DNA of 64,000 bases from Parasitella parasitica NRRL 2501 (Eukaryota; Fungi; Mucoromycota), in assembly GCA_025201805.1 (NCBI GenBank), contig MU619317.1, forward strand, positions 62,001-126,000, read 5' to 3'. The notes under the pieces were generated by a model, which was not told where the DNA came from, did not search any database, and was given only the letters and a program-made list of their open reading frames with translations. Below are positions 953 to 42,649 of this stretch, piece by piece. The translations under genes were made by a program, and so were the position numbers. Position 1 is the first letter of the stretch, and each line of letters opens with the position of its first letter.

Positions 953-1859
953 GTGGTATATTTGAAGAGAAAAGAAAAAGAAAAAGAAAAAAAAAGAAAG
1001 AAAGAAAGAAAGAGATGCAGATCACCAAAGCAAGGAAAAAAAGCATTTTTATTGTCGAGTTTGTTGTTGTTGTTATATTATATGTGTTTGAGTAACACAG
1101 CCAGGTTTGATTTCGGAAGTAACCAGAAACCCACTCACTTACTATTTTGCCACCGCTGCTGTTTGTGCTGTATATGAATATATGCACGTAAAAGTTTGTT
1201 TTTCTTGTCATTTTGTACAACATTTTCGTTTCCTGGATACATGCGTGTGTACTGTCCTGTTGTCTGTTTTTATGAATTTTTTTTTAATTTTACAACGAAC
1301 AAACAAGTCAAATGCGTAAGGGAGTCTATCATCTATAATTGACAAAAGACAATTAAAGGGGCTACAGGAAAGGAGGGGGGGGGGGAGGTGAGAAAAGAGG
1401 CTATACAGTGATACATGAATGATGCCAACACTTGTCACCAGACTTCAAACGCGATATGGAAGCAATCTAGTGCTACAAGAAAAAGGGTATCACTCATGGC
1501 AGCTCTTGCTTGTTCTGTACGTTACGTTCAATGGCCTATATGGTTTGCCAAATACTCCACGAAAATTCTGTAAAGATCTGCAGTGTAGGATAACAATCTT
1601 ACAAATCAGCACGACTAGTATCACGAAAGAGGCCAAAACGATACAATCCTGACAACGTTGGGATGACGTAAATATAAACTCATGTTTATCGCAAAAAAGT
1701 GCATCTAGTAAAAGGGTCAATGCATTTTGCTCTGAACGTTCCGGCCTAACCAATTCAATTGCAAGATTACACAGAAAAAGATGACTCTTCGGATCGTGCG
1801 GACTTGATCCCGCTCTCGTATAGAGCAGAGCTCACCTCTATCAAATACATCCACAGAAT

Positions 1860-1860
<1 letters not shown>

Positions 1861-1904
<44 letters not shown>
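1861..1904. repeat. Poly(A) tract, 44 nt, followed by an A-rich tail
   Basis: Directly visible run of A. Confidence 0.95.
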
Positions 1905-1906
<2 letters not shown>

Positions 1907-2026
1907 AAAAAAAGAAAGAGGTTAACTCTAGTTGTTTATATTAAAAAAACCCGGTTGGATACGTGCGTATGCTTTTAGCCATGTAAATATAAACAAACAA
2001 AAAAAAAAGAAGCACAAACAGGCAGG

Positions 2027-4507
2027 TTATTGCAAACTCATCTTTCGGTGGTATGATTGTTTTTTGGTATCTATTAGTCGGGTCTCCTCTTTCAATCTTG
2101 GCCTTGGGAGCAGGCAGGTTTGCTGCTGTGACACAGGTTGGTTTGTTTGCAAGCTACAGGCACAGCAACAGGATCCTTTTCGAGGTGAGAGCGATGCAGG
2201 AGGAAATGCTTTGGTGTCATGATGTTGAGTCGAAATTATGTCTGATCCGGAGAGATTAGTTGCTGATATTTCCAACGGCAGAATTTCAGATGTTGCTGAC
2301 TGCGTCGGTGATAGCCTGTTGTGCATGTTTGGAGAGAGAGATATCGCCTTGTTTTTTGTTTGTTGGTGGCGTATGGTGCTGTTGAGGTGCAGGATGCTGT
2401 TGCTTCTGTTGAGATAAAGAACTCTGGGTTTCTTTCCAATAGCCGCTGTTGTCGTCCGCTTGACCTCTCCTTGCACTAGGCTCAGAAATTCCTTTTCGTC
2501 AAAGTACTTGAGGGCTGCCCACGTAGGATTGAGAAAGGAAAATGTCTTTTTGAACGCATTCAGATGCTGCCGCCCCACACCGCCTCTTGGTTCAATGCCG
2601 TGCAGCGGCTTACTTGGTGCAGGCAAGGTACCCTTGGAACCTTGTTTCAGTGGCACCTTTCCCTTTTCCATCCTGCAGATGTTTCTTGCAATACAAACAC
2701 CGGCCAGTGTGGCTGCATAGCCCGTCTTCTCCTCGCGCACGTTCGTTACGTCTCCTCCAGAAAAGATATGGGTGTATTTCCAATGCTCGAGTTGCAATGT
2801 AGGCTTAACGCGGATTCGACCCCAATGGTCCAAGCACGACTCGAACCCAACATCGCCATCGTCTCGTATGACCTGGCTGCAGGGCGATGTCCCAGTGGCT
2901 ATAAACACCTTGTTGTAGCCTGAATAGCGAGCACCTGTGCTTCCTAAATATGTGTTGGTCTCTGCGGAATCGAAATCCACAATCTTCTCGTTGAGCACCA
3001 CCTGAACACCCAAGCTTTTGAAATATGAGACAGCGTTTTGCTGCCACTTTACAGAGCTTCTGTGGACCAGAGTGTTGTTGGAGTCGACCAGGGTAATCTT
3101 CTTTTTATGGTCATACGGAGCAGTGAATGTGTGGTTTGCAATCTCACTGGCCAGTTCGCAGCCTACGAGCCCTCCGCCAATAATCAAGACGGATCTGGCT
3201 TGCTTCAGCTGCTGATGTTCAGTGGATAATTCAGAGAGTCGATACAACGAAGATGTGTCAAATGACTTTAGCTTGGACTGGTATGTGCTTCCGGTAGCAA
3301 TCACGAGATAGTCAAAGGGAATCTATGTGCATGTATGTAGGTGCGTTAATGGGTTGATCTCACGACTGCCTTTCATTCTTTGTGCATTACATATTCATCA
3401 TTCACTTTGACATTTGTTGCATCATTTACAATCTGATCGGCGTAGCCAATCACAACCCTGCCCTGCTTGAGGTAAGCATCGTGTCTCACCCGCAGCGAGG
3501 ATGTTTCCTCAGGACGAACAAGCAGCTTGATCATACCGGGTGTGTATTCAAATGAGTCTATAGTTGGCCCGTGCGGCGATTAGTGTCTGGCTGATCCAGA
3601 AGGAATTGGGGTGGGGGGAGGGAGGAAGGGAGGAGATCGTGGTGCCTATAGCCGTCGTACCTTTTGTATCGACCAAAGTGACATGAAAACGTGGCATTGG
3701 GTCTAAAATCGAGGCAACTGTAAAACCCTATTATTTCAAAGGAACAACATAGTGTTACACATTGACTAAAAAGAGACAGCACACGAATGACATATATTTA
3801 CAGTGAATCCACCTCCAATGATGACCACCTTTTTTTGGTGTTTGATGTGTTGTGAATTGCAGCATAGTCTAGACAGAGCATTTGTGAGTGAGTCATGTAT
3901 TTTGACATTCTGGAAGCCATCTGCGTTACGTTTTGGCTGTTGGGCGGTATACTTTATCAAATTCAACAATTTTTTCATTCTACACAGTTATATGGCGTCA
4001 AGGTACCAAGGTGAGCAAATAAGTTGTACGTACCAGAAATATCTTTACTTCTGCTTCGGCATCTTTGAATATGTCGATAGCATCTCTTTTCGTGATGATG
4101 CCCCACCTATGCGATTTAATTTTGTCTCCTATGGCTTGCTTGCTGCCGACATTGAGCTCCAAAGGTGCGTCTTTTACGAGAAAAGTCTTCCATATTCTAT
4201 ATTAAGGGGAGCACGGGTTTAGCATAGTGTCGACATGAATGCAATAGCGAGCAAACCTGTTTACTATCTGCTCAATGAGGCTGTACGACGTTTCATGCCT
4301 TAATTCCGATAATGCCTCAATAAACAGCAAGTTTTCATGCGCATGGATATTCTGCAGGTAGGTTTGGAAAAAGGCAAGCTGCTCTGGTGAGGAGAGTATC
4401 TGATGCAGCCGTTCGTATTCTCGACAGTCAAAGCTGGAGATTGTCGTCAATGTTCCATCCTCTGAGCCTCTCTTTAAAGTGCTATTAATGTTGGCATCTG
4501 CTGTCAT
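2027..4507 (-). CDS. RGS domain fused to an AIF/AMID(FSP1)-like FAD-dependent NAD(P)H oxidoreductase
   Basis: Exons 1-2 encode LHQILSSPEQLAFFQTYLQNIHAHENLLFIEAL...RIWKTFLVKDAPLELNV (RGS signatures). Later exons encode KVVIIGGGFTG, FDYLVIATGS, VLIIGGGLVGCELASEI and HIFSGGDV (two Rossmann motifs plus the ATG and GD motifs of the Pyr_redox_2 family). GT-AG introns (e.g. 4197-4256, 3869-3929) join them in frame. Confidence 0.8.
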
Positions 4508-5017: not shown

Positions 5018-6705
5018 TTAATGCTTTGGATACATGGAAAATGCACCATCACCAAAGTATTTCTCGGATCGCTTTTCCTTTGTCTTTTCAACTGCTGCCG
5101 TAGGATCAATTAGCTCCATGCTCTGCGCAGGCGTAAATGCTAGTGACGACGCCAATCCAGATGTTGCTGTGCCAGAGACACGAGCAAAACTCTTGAGTTT
5201 TGGCCCTTTAACTATGGAAAAAAAAAAAAAAAAATCAGCCCTTCTTTGCTGCGTACAATTTGAGCTTTTTTTTTTTTTTAATACGTACCTTTGCTTCGTT
5301 GATCTGCAATAGACGCTCTGATTTTGCCCACTTGCTTGGTAGCCATGCCCAATCCTTCAGTTTCATCGCCATAGCCGACTTCCTCCTCTGCCTCACCAAA
5401 TGCCATTCTATTGCGAGCAGCACGCAATTCTGTCATGGCGTAGGCTTCATTCTGTCTTCTCACTCTTTTACCGCCTCGTCTCTTTTTAGGCCCCTCATCA
5501 GGAACAGGCAATGCCTTGGTAACCTTCAATGAGGGCGCCTCTTGCAGTTTGTCAATCTTTGCATCAACCTCATCTCTCATCTTTTGTCCTGCCTCTCCAC
5601 CCGGCGACTGGTGGCTAGCGTCGATGCGCGCCGCTAAAGCTGCTTTGGCGGAAACAATCTTGACCAACTTTTTCTTCAAATCCTGAGGTGCTGCCATAAT
5701 GGGTTCTGCAAACCCGATATAACCAGTGTGTCTGTCCATATGCGCTGTCGAAAAGCCAGTGTTGGTCTTTCGGTTGTTGCCGATTACCTGGACATTGCAC
5801 GACGGAATTTTGCAAAAGGCTGTGAGCCCACCAGCTGCGGTCAAGAGCTTGGCTGCAGTGGGTGTGCCGACAACCGCAGACAGGTTGGGCGCAATCACTG
5901 TCATTCGGGATTCTACATAGTTCATAATCTTTCTGCGTGCAGCGTCAAGATCCAAGGCCATATCACAGGCCTCTTCTGTCAGCCTCCATTCGTCTTCAGA
6001 GAGCGGCTTGCCTGAGGTTGTGGTGGCTGTAACTGTGATGACCATGATGGTCGCTGACGGCAGGATAGGTCGAAGATCAGCTTTGGTCACGTCTAATTCG
6101 TTGCCAATTGCCTTGACTGTGCGTGCGTATTCTAATGGGTTGTAGACTAGTGTTTCCAGTTCAGGGAACTTTGCTGCATAATGATCGCGAATAAACTAGG
6201 AGAGGTGTTATAAAATTGCCTTTATTTGTGTGTGTGTGTGTGTGTGTGTGGTGGAGCGAATTACCTTGTGCACAGTCTGTATCTCGTTGTCTATGTCGGC
6301 TGTCATGCTATTGGATTGGACAATCAGCTTGTATTCCTCATCTTCCTCTGTAGGTCCAACAACCTGCGATGCGTTGCGGTTCTGAGCAATGTAACTATCG
6401 ATTCTCTACAAAGCAAAAATGTTGATAATAGTAGCTGTAGCTTTGCTAGTGGCTCCTACCTTCAAAACCTCCTGTGTCTGCCTATTGTATAGGAGCTTGG
6501 CTATCCTTTTAACGCTGTTTGGGTTCTCGTCCGCACTCGCTGCAGACGACTCTTTGGTGGCATCCATTTTAACATCCCCCTCTGCATCTTTGCTCATTTG
6601 GTTGATGGCCTCTTGTTCTTCATCGACATCTGATCCTTGTTGCTCCTCTTCCTCGTCAGAGGTAAAATCAAGATCGGCTGCGAGTTCGTCGGCAAGTGTG
6701 GCCAT
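5018..6705 (-). CDS. PRP31: U4/U6.U5 tri-snRNP protein Prp31
   Basis: MATLADELAADL N-terminus, Nop domain (IAPNLSAVVG...AAKLLTAAGGL), KALPVPDEGPKKRRGGKRVRR, RAARNRMAFGEAEEE and C-terminal SGLASSLAFTPAQSMEL. Confidence 0.96.
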
Positions 6706-6720
6706 TGTCGGATATGTGTT

Positions 6721-6751
<31 letters not shown>

Positions 6752-6806
6752 CCACTGGCAAGACAGTGAGGTGGATAGGGAATGGTTATCATTTGTGACC
6801 AGCTAA

Positions 6807-7112
6807 ATGTCATGTACAGAATCAAATCAACATGACCATGAGCACCTCATGTCATTTCTCGATAAACAGCCCGATTTTATGTTGTCGGCATCAACAAGAG
6901 TACGGCTTGGCTCCTTCCTCGAGAAGGTCCATTCCAACTTTCTGAAATTGCCTTCATCACAACTAATTGATCGGGTGTGGCGATCAAAGCTGGCCCTCCC
7001 GTCAGCAGCAAAGGCTTTTTCAGATGAGGGGCCTGTCAGTGGACTCAGAGGGCACGATGCTATCTGTTACGTAAATGTGTCGGCTGTCCTTGAGACCACC
7101 CTATTGCCATAG
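6807..7112 (+). CDS. Possible small orphan gene divergent from PRP31 (3' structure uncertain)
   Basis: ATG-initiated 101-codon ORF with protein-like composition ~100 bp from the PRP31 start. Has a candidate donor (GTAAAT ~7071) and a strong polypyrimidine acceptor at 7200. No recognised homology. Confidence 0.3.
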   Translation: MSCTESNQHDHEHLMSFLDKQPDFMLSASTRVRLGSFLEKVHSNFLKLPSSQLIDRVWRSKLALPSAAKAFSDEGPVSGLRGHDAICYVNVSAVLETTLLP

Positions 7113-40196: not shown

Positions 40197-42649
40197 ATGC
40201 CCAATTCTGCTTCATTATCTACCTATACTACCATGATGCGAGTCAATTCGAAAGGAAGGCCTTATGCAAAAGTAGCACTATTTACATAAACAAACCTACG
40301 TATGTGATATTCATTATATCTATATCTTTTTTTCAAGGATTTGTTTGATCTATATTCAGCATTGCTGATACAGCAACCATTGGCAGATCACCGCTCTTTA
40401 TTTCGGACGTACCCCTCAACATTTACCACTGACGAAGCTGTCGAAAGTCTCGGACATTTAGAATTCACACATCTCGTATCAGCGCCCAACCCGCTCGATG
40501 CCAGCAATCCGATACTCACACGAACGACAACGACGTTCAGCATGTCAAGAGCAATGGCAAAGACGCTCGGTCAGCACTTTATCAATGCACGACTCGCTGA
40601 AAATGCTACAGACCCCCAAAACAGGACGATGAAGGATCGCGGCATATGGTCTCCTACGCCAAAAGGCAAATTCATGATCCAGGACTTTAGCCACCGTGCG
40701 CGGGTACCTATTAAGCATATGCAGGCACACTTGGCTCGCATTCAAACCTTTTCGATTGTGCAATTCGAACGGCTGCTAGATGACGACCAGATATCATTTT
40801 CGCGACAGAATATGATTGATGCTTTCAAGACAATGATGGAGTGGCTGCCAACAGACCACATCATGATTGACGATATCGGCGGTAAATGTGTGAAACTACT
40901 GCAAAAGTCTATATATACTAAACTCTCGAACTTGTAGGCGTGAACAATGATAATTTAATCGAGTACAAGGATACATTTTACGGGTATCAATGCTTTGAGT
41001 GGATCAGCGAATACACGAGCGTAGTCTCCAACGAAGAATCAGAGATGATTGCTGCTGAATTTGTGCAGTATGGCTGGATGCTGCAGGTCCTTGATAAATC
41101 AGACAAGATACTATCCAGAAAAGACGATTCAACACTGTTCAAATACGACCGACGAACTCAGTATTATTTGACGGAAAAGGGAAGACGCACATTAGAAGCA
41201 AATCGACTCCTGCATGGCCCGTCTTCTTCTTCCTCCAATACAGCCATCCATACCGTGCCTTCATCTAGATCAAGAACACAGAGCTCAAAAACAACCGCTA
41301 CAGTTACTAGCAGTGGCAGTAGTAGTAGTAGTATCAAAACAAGCAGTTCATCGCCGTCGCAGCCGCCGCTTAAGCCAATAGCCCTCCATAAATCAAAGAA
41401 AGAGGAGTATGCAAGCCGACTACTACCTACAACTGCAATCACTTCGCTAGTCGACTCAACCAGTATAGTGCCCAAAGCTGTCATTACCAAACGGAGGTCG
41501 ACTATTAGCCAAGCATCCATGTCATTGCCACTATCACCCCCATCCACTGCAGGAGCATCACAAGACATGAGAGAAACTTATTCATCTGAATCCATGCTGC
41601 AAATTGAAAGCAACTCGTGTGATTTTGGATTCTCGTCAGCGTCTTCTACTACGTCTTCTGCACCTACTACTATTGCGCCCTCAGCGTCCCTGGATGGCAC
41701 TGAAAGTGCAAAAGAACAAGAGCGCCAAATTTTGCAAGACAGACTCAACCAGCTCAGAATACAAAATAAAAGCGATCCAGGCGCACCTTTGCAAGAGTCG
41801 CTGGAGCACCAGCAGCAGTACCAATATCAGCCCAATTCCCAACATGCTCGATTGGAGAGCATCCTCGAAGACCCACTGATCCGCATGTATTTTCGCCAGT
41901 TTCTCAAGTCATGCTTTTGCGAAGAAAACATCAATTTTTGGGTGGATTACAACGCATTGATAAAGAAGTTGGGCTACGTCAGTGAAGATAAAGAAGCCAT
42001 CAAGCCAGAGGAGCTGCTCTCACTTCCATCTAAACTCTGCGAGTCGTTGCTTGTGCACTGCTGCTCTATCTACACCAACTACTTTTGCCCGGACAACGCT
42101 CCGAGTGAGCTGAACATAGACCATGGCCTCCGATACGACATTGTGCAATACATGCAAGCTACTTTTACTAGCATTGCCTATTCTTCGGACGAAGATAGTG
42201 GCAACGGAAAGCCCGTGGTGGCTGATGCTTCTAACGTGCCCTTTGGTTCCATCTCGGTGTCTTCTCATGGCATCCTCTCATCCACCACCATGTCTTCTTT
42301 TAGAAGAAAGAAAAAGCGATCAAACAGAAATCATGGCCCAGCTACAAGTAGCAGCTGCGCAGACGATTCAATGCTGGTGTCTGTTCGTGAAGGCGTCCAA
42401 GACTCGCTGCAAACATGCTTGTACAAGATCTTGCACCTGTATGACCAGGCAAATGATCATATCTGTCGTATCATGGCGCAAGATTCTGTCCCTAGATTTA
42501 TGAAAACTCAAAAATATATGGATTTGATGGAATCATACTACTTGACGCCAGAAGAAAGAAGAAAGAAGCTGAGTCGCGATGGGGATGTTGACGAGGAAGA
42601 GGATGATACGGATGAAGACGAGGATGAGGACGAGGATGGTGACTACTGA
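40197..42649 (+). CDS. DEP + RGS regulator of G-protein signalling (FlbA/Sst2-like)
   Basis: GRPYAKDLFDLYSAL...HRSLFRTYPSTFTTDEAVESL, TTTTFSMSRAMAK, DEP (TFYGYQCFEWI) and RGS (LESILEDPLIRMYFRQFLKSCFCEENINFW, APSELNIDHGLR, MAQDSVPRF). Confidence 0.93.

Follow-up and report, generated by a model that had tools for sequence, protein, structure and literature searches.

A single gene encoding a regulator of G-protein signalling (RGS) domain followed by an FSP1/AIFM2-like NAD(P)H oxidoreductase was found on the minus strand, at positions 4507-2027, of a 64,000-nucleotide stretch of the Parasitella parasitica NRRL 2501 genome (assembly GCA_025201805.1, contig MU619317.1, positions 62,001 to 126,000 of the forward strand). 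This whole stretch is hereafter called the window, and its coordinates are used throughout. That one gene encodes a protein with these two domains is virtually certain. The hand-derived model had seven exons and six introns with consistent exon phases, and its coding sequence of 2058 nt plus the stop codon formed a frame of 686 codons. When exon 7 was searched as protein, it matched with 100% identity an NCBI record of 686 residues, 'hypothetical protein BD408DRAFT_391541 [Parasitella parasitica]' (hereafter, P0001), and the translations of the seven exons were exact substrings of this record, starting at residues 1, 85, 139, 156, 178, 201, and 256, respectively. The deposited model is thus the same as that of an earlier reading of the DNA alone (the sequence-only reading), which had proposed that canonical splicing yields one frame and whose quoted peptides were all present in P0001. 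The gene was searched exon by exon, and the full-length analyses were performed on the database record.

Both domains of P0001 passed their Pfam thresholds, RGS (PF00615) at residues 34-142 with 38.8 bits against a cut-off of 23.9 and Pyr_redox_2 at residues 167-451 with 106 bits, which bore out the earlier proposal of one gene in which a short linker joins an N-terminal RGS domain to a flavoenzyme of the FSP1/AIF type. Among single exons, exon 1 gave a partial RGS match (20.4 bits, profile positions 2-41, E = 7e-4) and exon 7 gave Pyr_redox_2 (E = 7e-19); exon 2 alone had no Pfam match, and RGS passed the threshold only as a whole domain. A six-frame scan of the genome scored RGS at 30.4 bits at this locus. 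Along P0001, the RGS box (residues ~32-149) is followed by a linker of ~20 residues, the oxidoreductase (residues 167-~490), a set of C-terminal helices that are conserved in this family and specific to it, and a disordered tail. The AlphaFold model had a mean predicted local distance difference test (pLDDT) score of 73 and a predicted template modelling (pTM) score of 0.73, and residues 32-149 formed seven helices with pLDDT values of ~85-95. The Foldseek search with the full-length model retrieved flavoenzymes only and no RGS structures; therefore, the RGS fold was tested on the separately folded domain of a single-exon member from Piptocephalis. The PDB matches of this RGS-only model were all RGS domains (RGS8, RGS16, RGS4, RGS1, and others; template modelling (TM) scores of 0.6-0.7), and many of them were structures solved with G-alpha. 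The RGS part of P0001 itself aligned weakly to RGS2 and RGS10 (E ~5e-3).

Independent support for the fusion

The fusion of the two domains was also observed in other genomes and in one transcriptome. The Piptocephalis tieghemiana (Zoopagomycota) locus (L004) carries an uninterrupted open reading frame (ORF) at 1249-3198 that encodes 649 residues and spans both domains, so the fusion in that species requires no assumption about splicing. A unigene of 601 residues from a Nuclearia transcriptome (P0122) contains RGS (residues 42-147) and Pyr_redox_2 (residues 167-446) on one transcript, with the same domain spacing as in P0001. Fonticula alba has two proteins of this architecture, and in the one inspected, no ATG was present ahead of the GxGxxG motif in the flavoenzyme (second) exon. 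Furthermore, the distance from the last conserved Phe of the RGS domain to the FAD-binding Gly (FAD, flavin adenine dinucleotide) was 22-30 residues in all 43 of the aligned fused proteins. Across these 43 proteins, the mean pairwise identity of the RGS domain (41%) exceeded that of the linker (15%) and that of the tail (14%), a pattern indicative of purifying selection acting on the RGS domain.

Exon-intron structure

The six introns measured 60, 54, 61, 74, 103, and 68 nt in order of transcription, and all of them had the form GT...TAG. Exon 1 (4257..4507, minus strand, as are all features in this section) begins with the ATG at 4507-4505 and encodes residues 1-84, in which a disordered segment precedes the N-terminal half of the RGS domain with its AHENLLF motif. 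After intron 1 (4197..4256, 60 nt, GTTTGC...TAG, phase 2), exon 2 (4034..4196) encodes the second half of the RGS domain with the LELNV motif containing Asn99, and its translation matched residues 85-138 of P0001 exactly. Intron 2 (3980..4033, 54 nt, GTACGT...TAG) precedes exon 3 (3930..3979), which encodes residues 139-155, from the final RGS helix into the linker. Intron 3 (3869..3929, 61 nt, GTAACG...TAG) is followed by exon 4 (3802..3868), which encodes the remaining linker and the FAD-binding GGGFTG motif (residues 156-177). The FAD domain continues through exon 5 (3661..3727, residues 178-200) and exon 6 (3391..3557, residues 201-255), which are bounded by intron 4 (3728..3801, 74 nt), intron 5 (3558..3660, 103 nt), and intron 6 (3323..3390, 68 nt). 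Exon 7 (2027..3322) encodes residues 256-686 and the stop codon at 2029-2027; it carries the GGGLVGCE NAD(P)H site (Glu311), Glu315, the TG motif (Gly399), the GD motif (Asp446), the C-terminal helices, and the tail.

Intron 3 had been singled out by the sequence-only reading, and it proved to be required. Read-through meets a TAA at 3928-3926, within the GTAACG donor, which ends the frame after the RGS domain; hence, the fusion in this genome depends on this 61-nt intron. The predicted product of its retention would be a free RGS protein of 155 residues. The gene models of Rhizopus, Phycomyces, and Jimgerdemannia share the small exon 3, in which the linker starts, and the position of intron 3, and the residues on either side of the exon 3/exon 4 junction align to those of the orthologues.

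Distribution, paralogues, and phylogeny

The RGS-flavoenzyme architecture was found in dozens of genera of Mucorales, as well as in Umbelopsis, Jimgerdemannia (Endogonales), Piptocephalis, Fonticula, and Nuclearia. Among the matches listed, more than 60 relatives had both Pfam domains, and none came from Dikarya, chytrids, or holozoans, although the matches do not constitute a taxonomic census. The ESM Atlas contains a Mucoromycota cluster of 59 members, 98% of which have RGS and Pyr_redox_2. In the tree of the oxidoreductase part, all the fused proteins fell into one clade, with a Shimodaira-Hasegawa-like approximate likelihood-ratio test (SH-aLRT) support of 90, and apart from short fragments from metagenomes and a truncated public model, that clade contained no non-fused sequences. 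This single clade fits a fusion that arose only once, at an early date. Overall, the architecture is an old, selectively maintained family.

The Parasitella genome has three paralogous loci, on contigs C81 (the gene studied here), C142, and C52. The public model for the C52 paralogue (G000:C52:172043-174048, locus L008) is a protein of 469 residues without an RGS domain (P0079). A six-frame search of this locus revealed RGS-like exons upstream on the same strand, matching residues 32-85 and 74-203 of the query, and the public model is probably truncated at its N-terminus.

Several sequences related to this family were also observed. P0001 and a second protein labelled Parasitella parasitica (P0002) are only 76-78% identical, and the latter corresponds to neither the C142 nor the C52 copy in this genome; the strains or taxa behind the two assemblies may be quite divergent. 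A protein of 736 residues from a JGI metagenome (P0130) has RGS (residues 267-373) between the start of the FAD-binding region (residues 1-33) and the remainder of Pyr_redox_2 (residues 405-555), which may reflect an erroneously joined tandem pair or an alternative arrangement. Other metagenomic fusions in the same flavoenzyme family combine Pyr_redox_2 with TIR (P0133) or with patatin (P0156, P0183, and P0199).

The flavoenzyme part

By sequence, the top match among solved structures was human FSP1/AIFM2 (phmmer, E = 7e-21, residues 168-488). By fold, the top matches of the AlphaFold model in Foldseek were FSP1 entries, with TM scores of 0.73-0.77 at ~25% identity, followed by NDH-2, Ndi1, and sulfide:quinone reductases. 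Residues were mapped by alignment to human FSP1 in its native numbering (8WIK), and the roles of the FSP1 motifs (Glu156, Glu160, Gly244, and the GD motif) were taken from Nakamura et al. 2023 (PMC10643123). The NAD(P)H motif GxGxxGxE of FSP1, with Glu156, corresponds to GGGLVGCE in P0001, with Glu311, while Glu160, Gly244, and Asp285 of the GD motif correspond to Glu315, Gly399, and Asp446, respectively. Across the 43 sequences, Glu311 and Gly399 were invariant and Asp446 was present in at least 90%; among the four catalytic positions, the tally covered these three. The FAD-binding residues G173 and G175 were likewise invariant (43/43 sequences).

The FSP1 myristoylation motif MGxxxS is absent from P0001, which starts with MTADAN, and a Met-Gly start was found in 0 of the 42 complete N-termini of the family. 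The RGS domain therefore occupies the place of the FSP1 membrane signal, as had been suggested from the DNA. At the other end of the protein, helices were predicted at residues 511-517, 521-538, and 546-550 in the AlphaFold model (moderate to low confidence), and the mean pairwise identity of this region (residues 511-550) was 51%. The tail (residues 565-686, ~120 residues; window positions ~2027-2390) is disordered. Three short islands within it are conserved in close orthologues, one reading ISATN-LSGSD-IS, one rich in Cys (CCxCS), and one that is basic and lies near the end, and they could be phosphorylation or palmitoylation motifs.

The RGS surface and candidate G-alpha partners

We take the residues of RGS4 that contact Gi-alpha-1 to be Glu87/Asn88, Asn128, and Asp163/Ser164/Arg167. 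The corresponding residues of the family were aligned to RGS17, GAIP, and RGS10, and the AHENLLF motif aligned to SEENLLFW of RGS17 and GAIP (phmmer). The equivalents of Glu87 and Asn88, Glu58 and Asn59 in P0001, were present in 39 and 37 of the 43 proteins, respectively, and the equivalent of Asn128 in the catalytic loop, Asn99, was present in 32. Judged from these alignments, only two of the three canonical G-alpha contact segments are conserved in the RGS domain. Approximately 12 G-alpha loci and 15 RGS loci were found in the Parasitella genome; thus, possible partners of the RGS domain are present.

Proposed mechanism and alternatives

The sequence-only reading had suggested that the protein may couple G-protein signalling directly to redox or ferroptosis-like control. 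We infer a mechanism in which the flavoenzyme, as a peripheral membrane protein, would reduce quinones with NAD(P)H in the manner of FSP1 and NDH-2. In place of the myristoyl anchor of FSP1, the N-terminal RGS domain would bind activated, lipid-anchored G-alpha, and the activated G-alpha would recruit the enzyme or gate quinone reduction at the membrane. The RGS domain may simultaneously accelerate GTP hydrolysis as a GTPase-activating protein (GAP), and the protein would then be a G-alpha effector and a GAP in one, following the same logic as the RGS-RhoGEFs (GEF, guanine-nucleotide exchange factor) and the G-protein-coupled receptor kinases (GRKs). Taken by itself, this coupling of a quinone reductase to G-alpha is a tentative proposal that falls a little short of an even chance, whereas we lean slightly towards the explanation as a whole, that is, the two-domain gene together with the proposed coupling.

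A bolder version of the proposal would make the protein a direct G-protein flavoenzyme effector, in which G-alpha on the RGS domain positions or switches the quinone reductase while the RGS domain times the signal, and which would constitute an ancient, Holomycota-wide link from receptors to membrane redox and lipid-peroxidation defence that was later lost in Dikarya. Its full scope is a possibility that we regard as rather unlikely. The known G-alpha effectors comprise cyclases, phospholipases, RhoGEFs, kinases, and channels.

Several points weigh against a G-alpha-coupled quinone reductase encoded by a spliced gene. The Pfam score of the RGS domain in P0001 is modest, and the alpha7-alpha8 contact segment (RGS4 Asp163/Ser164/Arg167) was not recognisable in the alignment of the Mucoromycota members. 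On the enzyme side, the FSP1 alignment ends at residue 326, and no counterpart of FSP1 Lys355 could be assigned; Lys527, which is invariant and lies in the conserved C-terminal helix, is no more than a candidate. By analogy with NDH-2, the C-terminal helices could by themselves hold the enzyme at the membrane, in which case recruitment through the RGS domain would not be needed. Finally, the splicing of intron 3 in this genome is a prediction from homology and from the deposited model.

The first two of these points, together with the replacement of Asn99 in 11 of the 43 proteins, also speak for a doubtful but possible alternative, in which the fusion is real and the N-terminal RGS-homology module plays no G-alpha role, serving instead as an intramolecular regulator or as a dimerisation or docking surface for the flavoenzyme. 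Parallels are found in the RGS-homology modules of SNX13/14/25, D-AKAP2, and axin, which lack such a G-alpha role, and the short, length-constrained linker would fit a fixed intramolecular arrangement. Nevertheless, the contacts that are most diagnostic, the Glu-Asn pair (alpha3-alpha4) and the Asn of the alpha5-alpha6 loop, have been kept in most members over very long evolution, and the nearest structures are GAP-competent R4 RGS domains in complex with G-alpha.

It is also conceivable, although improbable, that a real G-alpha-coupled fusion has a different output, either reactive oxygen species of the NAD(P)H-oxidase type or an AIF-like pro-death function, as in yeast Aif1 and AMID. The first descriptions of AIF/AMID-family proteins were as pro-apoptotic factors, and enzymes of the NDH-2 type can lose electrons to oxygen. 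In addition, the fold matches included water-forming NADH oxidases, and one relative is labelled 'Apoptosis-inducing factor B' by its source. However, the closest solved relative, in both sequence and fold, is the quinone reductase FSP1, and the equivalents of Glu156 and Glu160, which belong to the proton relay of quinone reduction, are present.

The last alternative, in which gene prediction misjoined two adjacent genes, an RGS gene that terminates with the TAA at 3928-3926 and, downstream of it, an independent FSP1-like gene, is hardly credible and was rejected: although the RGS frame without intron 3 ends 17 codons into exon 3 and no stop codon interrupts the exon 4 frame upstream as far as an ATG at 3978, this ATG sits within RGS exon 3, the stop codon lies <100 nt from the Rossmann motif, and the single Piptocephalis ORF, the Nuclearia transcript with both domains, the ATG-free start of the second Fonticula exon, and the conserved linker length and intron position all stand against it.

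Novelty and implications

The sequence-only reading had not recognised this fusion as a characterised architecture. This held for the literature, in that our full-text searches found no publication on an RGS and FSP1/AIF-like architecture, and the main text of de Mendoza et al. 2014 does not mention an RGS-flavoenzyme fusion. The architecture was already present in databases, though, with an identical NCBI model and more than 60 relatives listed with both domains, some of which are named 'RGS domain-containing protein'. It is thus catalogued but apparently uncharacterised. More broadly, we know of no characterised RGS-redox enzyme, and our literature searches found none.

From nucleariid amoebae to Mucorales, an order to which the agents of mucormycosis belong, the fusion has persisted with its linker length fixed and in several paralogous copies per genome. 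If the RGS domain engages G-alpha, membrane quinone reductases of the FSP1 type would be recruitable by signalling and not by a lipid anchor, and Mucor and Phycomyces would offer a tractable genetic system for ferroptosis-like control of lipid peroxidation in fungi. If it does not, the family would provide a clean natural case of an RGS-homology domain co-opted to regulate an enzyme.

Neighbouring genes in the window

The upstream neighbour of the RGS-reductase gene, at 5278-6825 on the minus strand, is a Prp31 homologue (Nop, 184 bits; Prp31_C, 102 bits), separated from the start codon of the RGS-reductase by ~770 nt of intergenic sequence. On the other side, a run of ~46 A residues followed by more A-rich sequence lies at 1860-1920 (plus strand; poly-T on the strand of the gene), ~110-170 nt past the stop codon. 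A second, conventional RGS gene was found at 40940-42649 on the plus strand, with an ORF of 569 residues (RGS, 64.5 bits). This ORF also gave a DEP domain at 29 bits, which is below the Pfam cut-off, and it looks Sst2/FlbA-like.

Comparison with known systems

Like FSP1/AIFM2 (PDB 8WIK, 8JSC, and 8YO8), P0001 has both the FAD and the NAD(P)H Rossmann motifs and the equivalents of the catalytic motifs. The two differ at their ends: where FSP1 carries MGxxxS, P0001 has an N-terminal RGS domain of ~150 residues, and the proteins of the P0001 family end in conserved helices of their own and an extended disordered tail. The NDH-2 enzymes (yeast Ndi1 and those of Caldalkalibacillus, S. aureus, and mycobacteria) share the two-Rossmann fold and ranked just below FSP1 in the fold search, but their sequence identity to P0001 is only 17-21%. 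A glutamate proton-relay helix is common to NDH-2 and FSP1-type enzymes (PMC10643123). The helical C-terminal region of P0001 may match the NDH-2 membrane anchor in role. To our knowledge, no NDH-2 enzyme has an RGS domain.

With the R4/RZ-type RGS proteins (RGS4, RGS8, RGS16, RGS17, and GAIP), P0001 shares an RGS domain above the Pfam threshold, an all-helical RGS box, and the equivalents of Glu87/Asn88/Asn128. It differs from them in that the alpha7-alpha8 motif is not conserved in its family and that its RGS domain is fused to an enzyme. The arrangement of an N-terminal RGS or RGS-homology domain with a catalytic domain is also that of the RGS-RhoGEFs (p115, LARG, and Entamoeba EhRGS-RhoGEF, 4GOU) and the GRKs, in which activated G-alpha engages the enzyme directly, and EhRGS-RhoGEF was among the sequence matches of the family's RGS domain. 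In these proteins, however, the catalytic partner is a GEF or a kinase, whereas in P0001, it is a flavin oxidoreductase.

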